Shown here: positions 7,706-13,842 of the stretch, piece by piece
How the letters are laid out: every line of letters begins with the position of its first letter
Numbering within the stretch: the first letter of the stretch is position 1
NCBI GenBank assembly: GCA_025594325.1
Contig: JANHCV010000003.1
Coordinates: 558,001-622,000 of the forward strand
Direction of reading: 5' to 3'
DNA length: 64,000 nt
Source of the DNA: Blastocladiella emersonii ATCC 22665
Taxonomy: Eukaryota > Fungi > Blastocladiomycota
The notes under the pieces: generated by a model
What the model was told of the DNA's origin: nothing
Databases searched by the model: none
The model's input: the letters and a program-made list of their open reading frames with translations, nothing else
Made by a program: the position numbers and the translations under genes

Positions 7706-8264
7706 TCACTTGCGCGACAGCATCCCAATCACGAGCCCCGCGGCGGCAATCGCGCCGCCGACAATCGCCATCCCCACGAGCCCGTCCTTCTGGACCTGCG
7801 CGTCGATCGCGTCCAGCAGACCGCGCGCCTGCGGGTCCTCGGGGTGGTCGCGCAGCACCTGCTGGGCGTAGTTGCGCGCGTCCGCGAACCGCGCCAGCTT
7901 GAAGTACCCCTGCGCCACGTAGTACCGCGACTCACGACGCAGGGACGGGTTGTGCGGGATGATCTCTACAGACGCGGATGGCGGGGTTAGGGCGGGGAAG
8001 GGAGGGGGAGGGCAAGGGGAGGAGCGTACGCTGGAACAGGGCGATGCCGAGCTCAATCTCGTGGTACACGTTCGAGTGCACCAGGCCCCACGCGTAGTTA
8101 AAGGTCGTCGAGGCTACACAGATGCCATGTCAGCGAAGTCGCAGATATCCAGCGGCGTCGCGTGCCGTACTCGACGGGTTGGGCTGCTCGGCCTCGTACT
8201 GCTTGCGCAGCGTCGCGAGCTCCTTCTTGTCGATGGTGATTTCGCCCTCGAGCGGCGTCGTCAT
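7706..8264 (-). CDS. FIS1: Mitochondrial/peroxisomal fission protein Fis1 (TPR plus C-terminal tail anchor), 3 exons
   Basis: Spliced: LATLRKQYEAEQPNPSTSTTFNYAWGLVHS...RRESRYYVAQGYFKLARFADARNYAQQVLRDHPEDPQARGL...KDGLVGMAIVGGAIAAAGLVIGMLSRK*. Confidence 0.92.
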
Positions 8265-8585
8265 TGCGGTTACTTTGAGGGTGTTCGTTTGTTACGTGGC
8301 GCTGTGGCAGCGGTGGGTGCGGGAGCGAGAGCCGAGAGCGGGCAGGCAGCGGGCCTTGAAGGGGCAGCGGAGCGGCCGAGTGACGTGGTTGGTGCTGGCC
8401 TCGGCGGCGGCGGCGCTTCACGGACGCGTGGCTCATCTCGAAAAGGAAGCGTGCTCGACGAGAGGAGGAAAGAAAATATACTAGTGCGAGGATGACATGG
8501 AGGCGGGCGTGCAGCGACGGGAAGGAAGCGGAAGAGGTGCAAGTGGAATATACAGGCGATGATGAGAGCGGCGGCGGACCAGCGC

Positions 8586-9609
8586 TTAGGCGAGCATGGC
8601 CACGGCCGCGACGACCACGGCGGCGGCAGCGGTCGTCCATGCGCCGTTCGCGAGCTGGGCGGGCGCGGCCGAGGGCGGGGCGAGCGGGAGCTGGACCTTG
8701 AGGTCGTTGGGCGTGTAGACGTAGAAGATGCCCGAGACGAGCGGCATGAGGCGGCCCTCCGTGGCGGTGGGGTCGACGGCCTCCGTGTCCATGAGGCGCA
8801 GCACGTAGTCGCGGCGGTCCTCGAAGTTGTTGGACGGGATGGTCCAGTTGAAGTTGGTCGCGGACCCGGGCAGCGTGGTGATGTTGGTGTAGGTCGTACT
8901 CGACTTGGTGCCCCACTGCAGCACCATGTTCTTGGGCTTGATGGACACGCCGTCCAGCGACCACGTCGCGTTCAATGGGTACCTTTCGCTGCCGCGCGCG
9001 ACGACCGGGATCTCTACAGGCGGGGTGCGGGCGTGAGTTGATGGTGCGCGCCGCGAGGGCGTGCGGAGCGAGCAAAAACGTACGCCACCACGGGTACTGG
9101 ACCTGCTGCGGGGGCCAGATGAACTTGGGGCCTACATCGCGGACGACAGTTAGTCCAGTTGCGCGCGGCGTAGGAAGCGAGCGAGGCGGCAGCGTACGGG
9201 CAGACGTGGACACGGAGCCGTCAATGTTGCCGTCGGCGGGAATGTCGTTCGGGTTGGTCTGGCCGCCCGGGACGATGAGGCCGTCGTTGTTGTTGGTGTT
9301 CCCGTTGCCGTTGCCGTTGCCGTTCCCGTTGTTGTTGTTCGTGTTGCCGTTCCCGTTCCCGTTCCCATTGTTGGTGTTGCCGTTGTTCGCGTTGCCGGCG
9401 TTGCCGTTGTTGGCGTTTCCGTTACCAGCGTTCCCGTTGCCGGTGTTACCGGTGTTCCCCGTGTTACCGGTGTTGCCGGTGTTACCCGTGTTGCCCGTGT
9501 TCCCGCCGGTCCCACCGTTGCCGCCGTTGTTGGCCTGGGCGTCGGCCGTGCCGAGGAGGCCGAGGAGCACGGCGAGGAGGAGGGCGAGCTGCACAACCGT
9601 CACGCGCAT
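8586..9609 (-). CDS. Secreted, probably GPI-anchored surface protein with a Gly/Asn-rich repeat and a small beta-rich domain, 3 exons
   Basis: Signal peptide MRVTVVQLALLLAVLLGLLGTADA, then (GNT)n and (GN)n repeats. Two GTACG introns. Aromatic beta-strand domain (FNWTIPS...YVLRL...SGIFYVY) and a hydrophobic C-terminal tail ending at the stop. Confidence 0.75.
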
Positions 9610-10476
9610 CGTGGAGGTGGAGGTCGAGGAGGAGGAGGCGGCGTGGCTGCGAGGCGGCGAGGATGGAGAGTGGCTGAGTTGAGACTCGAGTACCCACTAC
9701 ACGCAGGAGCGGGCGCCGACGACGAGGACAAGGATTCCCGCGACAGGCAGCGCAAGATGGTGAGCTCGCGCGCGGTTGAGCGAGAGGATGGCGGGTCTCA
9801 CACACCAGTGGTTGCGCGCAGAGTTGGGCCGGGCCGTGAGCGTCGGGGATGGGTCGCTGCGACAGAGCAAGAATGCGCGGAATGCGTTGCAGCGAGTGGC
9901 GACGCGGGCTCGGCGTCTGCAAGAAAGCTACGTGGTGGTGGGGTGCGTTTTGCGAGGAGCGAGAGAGAAGGGGAGGCGTTGGCCGTTGCGGCAGGCGCAC
10001 CGGCGAGCGGTGGCAGCGAGAAGGCAGCCAAAATGAACGTGCATCACCTGACGCTGGCTGACGCGAACGCCGATCGCGCCGCCACCGCTGCCGCGGCCGA
10101 CCCAGTTCCCTTCTCCCGCCGCCCCTCGTCCTAAAGACGGTCTCCAGGAGCTCACGCTGGGCCCATCTCCCAAAAGGTAGTCTATGCAACGTCTCATGGA
10201 TCTCGATCAGCTGCGGGATCGCCTACACGCCGGCGACTGCGCGTCCCGCTCAGCTTGACGATCGGCCCCTCTGCTCCTCCCTCGTCAACGCAAACTCACG
10301 CTCTCTCGATCGTTCAACCGCGCCGACCCTCCGTCGATCCCTTCCTTCGAGTCGCATCCCTGAAGCGCGCCAACTCATCGTCATCCGTGACCAACACCAA
10401 CGTCAGCAACAACTCCGCCGTCCCGCGACCGCTCGCCACCAACAGCAAGAAGCCCTGTACACGCGCACCCACCACC

Positions 10477-12273
10477 ATGACGACCTGGGCGTCCATTGCT
10501 ACGCCGCCTGCTCCCGCGAGCACCGCCGAGCAGCCGCAGAGTAGCGTGTCCGTCTCGGAGCCCGCCGCCGCCGGCGCGATCCAGGCTGAGCCCGTTGCTG
10601 CCGCTGCCGCCCACACCCCGTCGCCCGCGCAGATCGCGGAGCCAATAGCTCCCCAGCCCGCCGCGCATGCTCCCGAGTCGTCCTCCGCACCCGCCACCCC
10701 CGCTATCGCCGCCGCCGCGCCGCTGCACTACGGCAACCGCACCATCTACCTGAGCGGTCTGACTGCCGACATCTCGCTGCCGCTGCTGCTCGACCACGTG
10801 CACTTTGGCCCGCTCGAGTCGGCGCGTGTGGTCCCCGAGAAGGGGTGCGGGTTCCTGACCTTCCTCGACCCGATCGAGGCCGCCGGCTTCTACGCCGCGC
10901 ACCAGCACTCGCGCCTGACCGTCGCCGGCACCGAGCTGGCCGTGCACTGGGGCCGGACGGGTGCCACGGGCGCGTCGCCGATCCCGCTCAACATCGCCGC
11001 CGCCGTCGCCGCGGGCGCCTCGCGCAACGTGTACGTCCCCGGCGTGCCCCTCGGCACCACCGAGGCCGAGCTGCGCGCTGATTTCGGCCCGTTCGGCGAG
11101 ATCGACTCGATCCGCATCGTGCGCCCGCGCGAGGGACACCAACTCGGCATCGCGTTCGTCCACTTCGCGCACATCGCCTCGGCCATGAAGTGCGTCGCGT
11201 TGATTGCCGCCAGCGGCCCCAAGTACGCTGGCCGCCGCCTCGCGTACGGCAAGGACCGGTGCGCGCCGTCCCCGCGCCAGCAGTACTGGTCGCAGCAGGG
11301 CGGCGGCGATGCTCAAGCTGCGCCTGCGGCGCCCGCGTGGGGCACGCCCTTCATCGACCCGACATTCGCGCACTCGGACAACCTCGCGCTGCTCCCGGCC
11401 GACGCGCACGAGCGGCTGAACCCGTTCGCGACGCGCACCGTGTACGTCGGCGGGCTGCCCGACGGCGCCATCGCCGAGGACCTGTGCAACGTGCTGCGCG
11501 CCGGCCTCATTGAGAAGGTGTCGGTGCTCCCGGGCAAGCACACGTGCGGGTTTGTGACGTTTGTCGACCCGCGCGCCGCCACGCTCGTCCTGCACCTCGC
11601 CGAGACCCACGGGATCGTCGTCCGCGGCCGCCGCGTCAAGTGCGGGCTCGGCAAACCCACGCCGCCGCTCGCGCCCAACGTCGCGCACGCCGTCGTCGCC
11701 GCTGGCGCTACCCGGTGCGTGTACATCGGCCCGCTCACCCAGCTGTTCGCCGAGGTCGCCGCCGCCGTGCCCGGTGCGACCGTCGCGCCGACCGAGACCG
11801 GAAGCGTCACCGTGACGACCGACACCCCGACAGCCGCGGCGGCGCTGCAGTCGGGCGTCGCGGCCGTGCTCCTCGCCGATTTCGCGCCGTACGGCGCCGT
11901 CGAGGTGATTCACGTCATGCCGCACAAGCAGTGCGCCTTCGTCAACTACGCCAACCTGCGCGGCGCGATCCGCGCCGTCGCCGAGGCGCCCGCGGTCCTC
12001 CACGCAAAGTACGGCTACGTCCGCATCGCGTACGGGCGCGACCGCGTCGCCGCGCCCATCCGGCTCCCGCGTGAGCCCGAGCTCCCGATCGGCGGGATGA
12101 TCCCGCGCCGGAACAACGGGTCGTTTGTGCCGACCATCGCGCCGGCGCAGGGGGCGGGGCTCCCGGCGAAGCCCGTGCATGTGGCGGCAGCGGCGGCGGT
12201 GAACGAGGTCAAGCAGGAGGCGGTGGTGGGTGAGGAGGGCGAGGTGGTTGCCGAGGTCGCGGCGATGCACTAG
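10477..12273 (+). CDS. Four-RRM RNA-binding protein of the budding-yeast Mrn1 / fission-yeast Nrd1 (Msa2) type, intronless
   Basis: Start ACCACCATG at 10477. Two tandem RRM pairs: RTIYLSGL...EKGCGFLTF...VHWG; GASRNVYV...FGEID...IAFVHF...RRLAYGKDRCA; RTVYVGG...; RCVYIG...CAFVNY...RIAYGRDR. Confidence 0.75.
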   Translation: MTTWASIATPPAPASTAEQPQSSVSVSEPAAAGAIQAEPVAAAAAHTPSPAQIAEPIAPQPAAHAPESSSAPATPAIAAAAPLHYGNRTIYLSGLTADISLPLLLDHVHFGPLESARVVPEKGCGFLTFLDPIEAAGFYAAHQHSRLTVAGTELAVHWGRTGATGASPIPLNIAAAVAAGASRNVYVPGVPLGTTEAELRADFGPFGEIDSIRIVRPREGHQLGIAFVHFAHIASAMKCVALIAASGPKYAGRRLAYGKDRCAPSPRQQYWSQQGGGDAQAAPAAPAWGTPFIDPTFAHSDNLALLPADAHERLNPFATRTVYVGGLPDGAIAEDLCNVLRAGLIEKVSVLPGKHTCGFVTFVDPRAATLVLHLAETHGIVVRGRRVKCGLGKPTPPLAPNVAHAVVAAGATRCVYIGPLTQLFAEVAAAVPGATVAPTETGSVTVTTDTPTAAAALQSGVAAVLLADFAPYGAVEVIHVMPHKQCAFVNYANLRGAIRAVAEAPAVLHAKYGYVRIAYGRDRVAAPIRLPREPELPIGGMIPRRNNGSFVPTIAPAQGAGLPAKPVHVAAAAAVNEVKQEAVVGEEGEVVAEVAAMH

Positions 12274-12535: not shown

Positions 12536-13842
12536 ATGTTCGGCCTGACGCGCGTGTTCCCGGCGCTGCGGCGGCAAAAGCTCCTGCGGCGGTTCCTGTA
12601 CCTGCTGGTGCTCCTCGCAGCGTGGGTCGGCATCATCGTGCCAACGTACATGGTGTACCGGCACGAGATCACCGACAGCAACGTGCTGCCGTCGTCGGCG
12701 CTGCCCACGTTCCCGCACTACCTCAACGTGTCGGCGCGGCTCGCCAACATCGACCCGCTGCGCGGCACGTGCCGGCTCACGCTCGACCTGATGCCCGTGC
12801 TCGACGGGCCCGGCACCGTCACGCCCGAGACGGAGCTGTTCAGCCGTATCAACGGCGAGCGGCGGCTCAAGGTGCCCGTCACGCTGTTCCTCCAGGACGT
12901 GCGCAAGAGTTTTGCTGTTGATGACCGGCTTGGGTCGAGTACGTTCCTGGGGTACTTGCGAGGATGCGGAAGCTAACTTCGTGAGCACTCGTAGTCGACG
13001 TGACGCTCCCGTTCGAGGACGGCGACACGCGCGACTACCCGTTCGACCAGTACACGAGCATCGTCGACATCGTCGCGCAGGTCACGGTCAACGCGACGCG
13101 CGCGGTGCCGCTGCGGTTCACGCTCAACGGCGCGGTGCCCGGGTTCTCGCTCGAGAAGATCGGCGTCTTCGTCGACGAGGGCCAGGGGTTCGGCACCGTG
13201 CTGCTCAGCCTGACCATCGGCCGGTCCGGCACGACCAAGGGCTTCTCCATCTTCATCAACTTCCTCAACTGGTGCCTCGCCCTCATCATGGGGTACCTCG
13301 CGCTCCAGGTCGCGCGAAAGAAGCGGACCGTCGAGCCACCGCTGCTCGCGCCGCCGTGCGCGCTCCTGTTCGCGCTACCGTCGCTGGTACGTGGTCGCGG
13401 CTGTGGTGAGGTGCGAGGCGCGACGCTGACGAGAGGTTTGGCCGTGTAGCGCAACGTCCAGCCGGGCGTCCCGGGAATCGGCGTCACGGTCGACGTGCTC
13501 GCCTTCTTCTGGTACGCCCTTCTCGCTCCCCTGTCGCCGGCCGACAACTCACCTTACCCGCGTTGCAGGAACATGGCCATCGTCGCCATCTCGGCCATTG
13601 TCATCATCCTCTACTACATCCTGCGGTGGAGCAAGCCGAGCGCCGCGTCCTCTGATACCGCCACTGCGGCCGCCAAGTACCCCGAGCCGCACCGGTCGAG
13701 TGCGGGCAGCGGCAGCGGCGCTGCCGCCGGCGAGCTGCCCATGTATGCCAGCCCGGCGCCGGGCGACGCGTTCCCGATGAACTCGCTTGGTCACCGCCCA
13801 GAGCACGCCAGCGCGGTTGCAGGCGGCAAGGTGCAGTTTTGA
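12536..13842 (+). CDS. DUF4436-family membrane protein, 4 exons
   Basis: Introns 12939-12994, 13387-13449 and 13512-13568. N-terminal TM, a beta-rich ectodomain with GDTRDYPFDQY, then three TMs with LFALPSLRNVQPGVPGIGVTVDVLAFFW, which matches my recollection of the DUF4436 pattern. Confidence 0.7.

Follow-up and report, generated by a model that had tools for sequence, protein, structure and literature searches.

Pentameric ligand-gated (Pro-loop) ion channels (pLGICs) are recognizable across the superfamily by a small set of residues. The seven most conserved are the F/Y, the P (100%), and the D of an F/Y-P-x-D motif, a Trp in strand beta9, an Arg directly before the first membrane helix (pre-M1), a Pro in M1, and a Pro in the M2-M3 loop; a salt bridge joins the pre-M1 Arg to the loop Asp (Jaiteh et al., 2016, PMC4795631). 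The same inventory, like others of its kind, reports no pLGICs in Fungi. The gene considered here, at 12536-13842 (+ strand) of a 64,000-nucleotide (nt) window (positions 558,001 to 622,000 of contig JANHCV010000003.1) from the blastoclad fungus Blastocladiella emersonii ATCC 22665, encodes a 376-amino-acid protein of family DUF4436 (PF14494), a family without an assigned function; all positions below are those of the window. A first-pass annotation, made from the sequence alone, proposed that this protein is a divergent pLGIC homolog. The proposal is supported by the predicted fold, by top structure matches that are exclusively pLGICs, and by invariant residues at hallmark positions; sequence profiles also rank pLGICs first, at expectation (E) values of only 0.014-0.12. 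On these predictions, the DUF4436 protein is likely to be a remote and so far unannotated branch of the superfamily.

Predicted fold and hallmark residues

An AlphaFold2 monomer model, built without templates from a 71-sequence alignment, has a mean predicted local distance difference test score (pLDDT) of 88.3 and a predicted template modeling score (pTM) of 0.77. Residues 58-306 form a beta-sandwich ectodomain of the ten-strand type, followed by three helices, in the order found in pLGICs. A Foldseek search of the PDB with the whole model returned at least 500 matches at E <= 1e-3; each of the top 50 is a pLGIC (nicotinic, glycine, GABA-A, GluCl, or GLIC), with E values of 4e-9 to 4e-8, a probability of 1.00, and ~300-340 aligned columns. 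A second search, independent of Foldseek and covering 48,161 representative chains, placed pLGICs at ranks 1-19 (Z 10.7-8.7), each covering residues 58-306; these include GABA-A, ZAC, GluCl, RDL, sTeLIC, GLIC, ELIC, DeCLIC, nicotinic acetylcholine (nAChR), glycine (GlyR), and cephalopod receptors. Chains other than pLGICs match only the three-helix part in this search; both domains together are matched by pLGICs only. By VIA-align, residues 58-306 of the model superpose on residues 35-307 of GABA-A beta3, from beta1 to the end of M3, with a Z score of 10.8 and a root-mean-square deviation (rmsd) of 5.2 A over 211 residues. The first-pass annotation would have counted its proposal as refuted if the beta-sandwich and helix bundle, or any profile link to these channels, were lacking. 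This outcome was not observed: the sandwich and M1-M3 are predicted, and pLGICs head the structure searches.

The likeness is also seen with the ectodomain by itself. Residues 48-214 folded alone gave a pLDDT of 93.5 and a pTM of 0.87, and against the same 48,161 chains this model matched pLGIC ectodomains or AChBP at all of ranks 1-29 (Z 9.0-6.5, 123-141 residues aligned), while other sandwiches reached Z values of at most 6.1 over shorter alignments. The Foldseek top 50 for the ectodomain alone were again all pLGICs. An ESM Atlas model of an actinobacterial DUF4436 cluster agrees with the AlphaFold2 model to 2.8 A over 279 residues spanning 9-309, including the N-terminal helix discussed below. 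After DUF4436 itself, the nearest ESM Atlas neighbors are two bacterial clusters without a Pfam family and then Neur_chan_LBD clusters, the first with one.

Conservation was counted in 71 full-length DUF4436 proteins. The equivalent of the Pro-loop motif is Y149-P150-F151-D152 (13036-13047, + strand), between the strands at residues 134-140 and 153-164: position 149 is Tyr in 67 members and Phe in the other four, Pro150 is present in 71/71, and Asp152 in 68/71. The equivalent of the pre-M1 arginine, Arg211 (13222-13224, + strand; conserved in 70/71), ends the last ectodomain strand, directly before the first of the C-terminal helices. If the last three positions of the ectodomain alignment are taken as ungapped, it falls on GLIC R192, GABA-A beta3 R216, and 5-HT3 R218. 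The M2-M3 loop corresponds to residues 266-280 and holds R266 (71/71), P270 (70/71), P273 (66/71), G276 (71/71), and D280 (71/71), with P263 (69/71) just before it; by spacing, either P270 or P273 would be the exact equivalent of the pLGIC loop proline. At the beta1-beta2 turn, D73 is conserved in at least 90% of the members. Five of the seven pLGIC hallmarks are thus kept in DUF4436: the Y/F, P, and D of the motif, the pre-M1 Arg, and the M2-M3 loop Pro.

A YPFD tetrapeptide would be expected by chance in an estimated ~7% of proteins of this size. That it is not a chance occurrence here follows from the family counts, with Pro and Tyr/Phe each in 71/71 members, Asp in 68/71, and the pre-M1 Arg in 70/71. 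Of 138 retrieved proteins at least 250 amino acids long, 117 have [FY]Px[DE] ... R ... PxxP in colinear order, among them a paralog in B. emersonii and both members of a bacterial tandem pair. Ranked by segment, conservation is highest in the M2-M3 loop (0.68), followed by M2 (0.60), the Pro-loop (0.56), M3 and M1 (~0.47), and the N-terminal helix (0.27). By this order, DUF4436 is most strongly conserved where the outside domain meets the pore-side helices, which is also what has been reported for pLGICs.

Searches by sequence alone point the same way at much lower strength. Profiles were searched against 177,635 distinct PDB sequences. The top match for the whole-family profile was to the octopus chemotactile receptors, which are pLGICs (E 0.12); for the core profile it was again to these (E 0.014), and for the ectodomain profile it was to GluCl (E 0.032). 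It seems unlikely that a pLGIC would come first for three profiles by chance. In the whole-family alignment, YPFD falls on the Cys-loop YPFD of octopus CRT1, and R211 on the pre-M1 RR of CRT1. NCBIfam yielded nothing, and exons 1 and 2, searched against the PDB as single sequences, brought up nothing above noise. Because these sequence links are insignificant, inventories based on sequence have missed DUF4436.

Gene structure, topology, and the N-terminal helix

The interval 12536-13842 (+ strand) is a single gene with four exons and three introns. Exon 1 (12536-12938) encodes residues 1-134 and the first base of codon 135, and thereby the basic cytoplasmic N-terminus, the N-terminal helix (here TM0), a linker, and beta1 to about beta5. 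Exon 2 (12995-13386; residues 135-265) covers beta6, the Pro-loop, beta7-beta10, the pre-M1 Arg, M1, the M1-M2 loop, and most of M2; exon 3 (13450-13511; residues 266-285 and two bases of codon 286) contributes R266, the P-x-x-P of the M2-M3 loop (P270/P273), G276, D280, and the start of M3. The rest of M3, to residue 304 (nt 13623), and a tail of residues 305-376 are encoded by exon 4 (13569-13842), which ends in a TGA stop codon (13840-13842) and holds no M4. The introns, at 12939-12994 (56 nt), 13387-13449 (63 nt), and 13512-13568 (57 nt), all on the + strand, have GTACG donors (GTACGT in the first), AG acceptors, and CTAAC, CTGAC, and CTCAC branch sites, CTAAC being that of intron 1. The motifs listed in the first-pass annotation are all present where it placed them: a beta1-beta2-like stretch in exon 1, DTRDYPFDQY at 13024-13053, VPGFSL, LSLTIGR with Arg211, and RNVQP...TVD at 13450-13494. 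Upstream, a 672-amino-acid open reading frame (10255-12273, + strand) stops ~260 nt before the DUF4436 start codon.

The exons were searched separately. A database search with exon 2 recovered a 376-amino-acid record (P0001, hypothetical protein H9P43_003031 of B. emersonii ATCC 22665) identical to the translations of all four exons plus the two split codons, and this record was used for the full-length analyses. The whole protein matches Pfam DUF4436 over residues 95-301 at E 7.1e-31, its 107.9 bits lying above the gathering threshold of 23.2 bits. Exon 2 alone matches the same family at E 5e-15, and exon 1 alone has no Pfam match.

Hydropathy and the AlphaFold2 model together give one N-terminal helix (residues 15-47) and three C-terminal ones (213-242, 249-266, and 278-304). 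This is the layout that had been anticipated from the sequence, M1-M3 plus an N-terminal helix, and no helix follows the third C-terminal one. The basic N-terminus occupies residues 1-19 and overlaps the start of the long N-terminal helix, whose hydrophobic core, TM0 proper, is at residues 20-42 (12593-12661, + strand); six Arg/Lys precede this core, and model pLDDT is 92-94 there. About eleven strands follow in the model (residues 62-211), beginning with the beta1-beta2 hairpin (residues 62-88; 12719-12799, + strand), which has the near-invariant Asp73 at its membrane-side turn and the sequon N64-V-S. The M1-equivalent helix (213-242; 13228-13317, + strand) has near-invariant F218 and W227. 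A basic RKKR loop and a conserved V-E-P-P lead into the M2-equivalent helix (249-266, + strand), which contains a conserved LLFALP; its residues 249-265 are at 13336-13386, and exon 3 opens with the codon for residue 266. The M3-equivalent helix of the model (278-304, + strand) ends at nt 13623. The cytoplasmic tail (305-376) is of low confidence in the model and unconserved. From the sequence, the basic N-terminus and the RKKR loop between the first and second C-terminal helices are predicted to be cytoplasmic and the strand-rich domain to lie outside; both N-x-S/T sequons (N64 and N167) are on the outside. Nearly all full-length relatives share this helix layout, including those on bacterial-type contigs, in Tumidithrix, and in a Blastocatellia (Acidobacteriota) genome; the architecture recurs in chytrids, Zoopagomycota, Dikarya, cyanobacteria, Acidobacteriota, and Actinomycetota.

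TM0 is likewise found in nearly all full-length members, bacteria included, and is the least conserved helix. With 22-23 hydrophobic residues after a 19-residue basic start, it appears to be an uncleaved signal anchor. It runs in-to-out, the same membrane direction as pLGIC M4, and may do the job of M4 as an outer, lipid-facing helix. The suggestion that TM0 stands in place of M4 agrees with the way TM0 crosses the membrane, with its occurrence in bacteria as well as fungi, with its weak sequence conservation, and with its keeping the same position in two independent models.

Relatives and distribution

The exon-2 search returned at least 312 clusters (50% identity) at E <= 1e-3. Orthologs are found across Blastocladiomycota, in Allomyces, Catenaria, Sorochytrium, Coelomomyces, and Paraphysoderma, and the B. 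emersonii genome holds a paralog, H9P43_005861 (P0155), at 33% identity that keeps YPFD. Further fungal members come from Chytridiomycota, Zoopagomycota, Basidiomycota, and Aspergillus flavus, and bacterial ones from Actinomycetota, Cyanobacteriota, Acidobacteriota, and Pseudomonadota. The first-pass annotation had set its proposal against a general absence of these channels from Dikarya; this context does not fit the host, a blastoclad, and the DUF4436 family does occur in Dikarya. In a quick tree (unrooted, from a query-biased sample), the gene stands next to Catenaria, with a support of 96 in the Shimodaira-Hasegawa-like approximate likelihood ratio test (SH-aLRT), and five rows labeled bacterial fall in one clade. 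These placements and the three introns together speak for a resident blastoclad gene and against a recent transfer.

Several relatives have arrangements worth recording. A bacterial metagenome contig (L003) carries two head-to-tail DUF4436 genes at 8001-8885 and 8993-9898. Their identity is 61%, and YPFD, the pre-M1 Arg, and the M2-M3 loop motif are retained in each; the cyanobacterium Tumidithrix has genes with 85-86% identity to the first. Such tandem paralogs would fit heteromeric assembly. On another contig (L001:8001-8909), a bacterial DUF4436 gene adjoins a phage-type integrase, helix-turn-helix regulators, and a RepSA replication gene, at the edge of an apparent integrative element, with a CLC channel gene ~5 kb upstream. 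One 631-amino-acid protein (P0011) has two DUF4436 stretches by Pfam, either a tandem duplication in one frame or two merged gene models. Four long relatives (P0030, P0058, P0112, and P0023) combine DUF4436 with F-box/FBO_C, p25-alpha, or DUF5092 parts; these are probably neighboring gene models merged in fungal annotations and would offer no functional clue. A 5,434-amino-acid protein (P0044) that matched exon 2 at E 2e-11 was rejected as a relative: it consists of ~50 filamin repeats with six weak, repeat-driven matches, and was left out of the alignments.

Interpretation and comparison with known systems

A number of observations weigh against placing DUF4436 among the pLGICs. On the sequence side, no single profile link is significant (best E 0.014), the Pfam Neur_chan models give no match to any of the 71 members when the threshold is relaxed to E <= 10, the membrane-part profile finds no pLGIC in the PDB and only a non-significant G protein-coupled receptor, and language-model neighbors include no named one outside DUF4436. 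Two hallmarks are missing or doubtful in the 71 members: residues 213-242 have no conserved proline corresponding to the M1 kink (present in 77% of pLGICs), and a counterpart of the beta9 Trp is doubtful, residues 185-194 having no conserved Trp and positions 187 and 191 being hydrophobic and often Phe. The loop-C region (195-201) is short, gapped, and variable, with no conserved aromatic box evident. M2, very hydrophobic and rich in proline, would make an unusual pore lining, and a C-terminal M4 is absent: neither this protein nor any family member free of fusions has a hydrophobic segment following M3. The structural scores are moderate (Z 9-11, rmsd 4-5.5 A, template modeling (TM) scores 0.3-0.46), and the query-side structures are predictions throughout.

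Taken to the extreme, these points could mean that DUF4436 is unrelated to pLGICs, and that AlphaFold has reproduced a memorized pLGIC shape from YPFD and the helix pattern, or that the likeness is convergent. The insignificant sequence links and TM-scores below 0.5 with an rmsd of 4-5 A fit that view, and no DUF4436 member has a solved structure. Against it, the model was made without templates and owes its high confidence to the 71-sequence alignment; the ectodomain without its helices takes the same fold, with the same exclusive pLGIC/AChBP matches; the structure that another predictor gives for a bacterial DUF4436 protein superposes at 2.8 A; the five conserved hallmarks occupy positions that match both in order and in structure; and three different profiles each put a pLGIC first in the PDB. 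An artifact or convergence is very improbable. The fold could conceivably also be derived from pLGICs, or share an ancestor with them, in a membrane receptor, scaffold, or sensor that does not conduct, is monomeric or of some other stoichiometry, and uses the junction for folding or for signaling to a partner. A hydrophobic, proline-rich M2 without a conserved polar stripe suits such a protein; so do the missing M4 and M1 proline, the lack of a long loop C, and the moderate structural scores. The peaks of conservation nevertheless fall in M2, the M2-M3 loop, the Pro-loop, and the pre-M1 Arg, the pattern expected if an ectodomain is coupled to a pore (PMC4795631); conserved charges lie at both ends of M2 (V-E-P-P below, the invariant Arg266 above); and the tandem paralogs on the cyanobacterial contig recall the subunits of heteromeric channels. 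A non-conducting protein of this kind seems unlikely, if clearly less so than an artifact.

A tentative proposal, to which we would give a little less than an even chance, is that DUF4436 is a sister branch, or a permuted one, of the Pro-loop receptors, with an N-terminal signal anchor in the outer M4 position, and that its members function as pentameric channels. The subunits would come together as a ring, most probably of five, in which M2 lines the pore and TM0 is the outer, lipid-facing helix acting as M4. A stimulus would change the conformation of the ectodomain, and the change would be relayed through the Pro-loop, the D152-R211 pair, the beta1-beta2 turn, and the M2-M3 loop to M2, so that the pore opens or closes. 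As to the stimulus, the first-pass annotation went further and suggested a chemosensory channel. This is unsupported, and so is the term "ligand-gated," since the loop-C region is short, gapped, and variable and no aromatic box is evident.

If DUF4436 is a true branch of the superfamily, then Fungi, both early-diverging lineages and Dikarya, and several bacterial phyla would carry pLGIC-type proteins missed by sequence-based inventories. The superfamily would then include a form with three C-terminal helices and one N-terminal one, which bears on the long-running question of the purpose of M4, and the junction of Pro-loop, pre-M1, and M2-M3 loop would be older and more general than either the ligand sites or the four-helix bundle. 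A function-less family of at least 312 clusters would gain a concrete, testable mechanism, and zoosporic fungi and Dikarya such as Aspergillus a candidate surface sensor or channel. For structure work, the small, intron-free cyanobacterial members (Tumidithrix) are suitable.

A literature search found no paper linking DUF4436 to pLGICs, the family being mentioned only in an expression table; coverage was incomplete, and an earlier notice elsewhere, for example in structure databases, is possible. Within DUF4436 (PF14494) the B. emersonii protein is a clear member, with all family-conserved motifs and no structural difference. AChBPs share the ectodomain fold (Z 7.2-5.9) but are soluble, without membrane helices, and differ also in their long loop C and aromatic ligand box. 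Some prokaryotic pLGICs, DeCLIC among them, likewise carry extra parts before the ectodomain, and DeCLIC aligns with residues 58-306 of the model at Z 9.5; additions of the DeCLIC type are soluble periplasmic domains in proteins that keep M4, whereas the DUF4436 addition is a membrane helix and M4 is gone.

The ectodomain of a pLGIC has roughly 200 residues; that of the DUF4436 protein has ~155. Compared with pLGICs as a whole (PF02931 + PF02932; GLIC, ELIC, sTeLIC, ZAC, GABA-A beta3, GluCl), DUF4436 has an N-terminal signal-anchor helix instead of M4, no long M3-M4 loop, no N-terminal ectodomain helix, a short and variable loop-C region, no conserved M1 proline, and a short, hydrophobic, proline-rich M2, and it is missed by the Pfam Neur_chan models. 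The two have in common the order of parts and the predicted fold, a beta-sandwich and then M1-M3; the [F/Y]PxD tip of the beta6-beta7 loop with its invariant Pro, the pair of Asp and pre-M1 Arg, and the proline of the M2-M3 loop; a membrane topology in which the ectodomain faces outward and the M1-M2 loop inward; and the strongest conservation at the junction between ectodomain and membrane domain.

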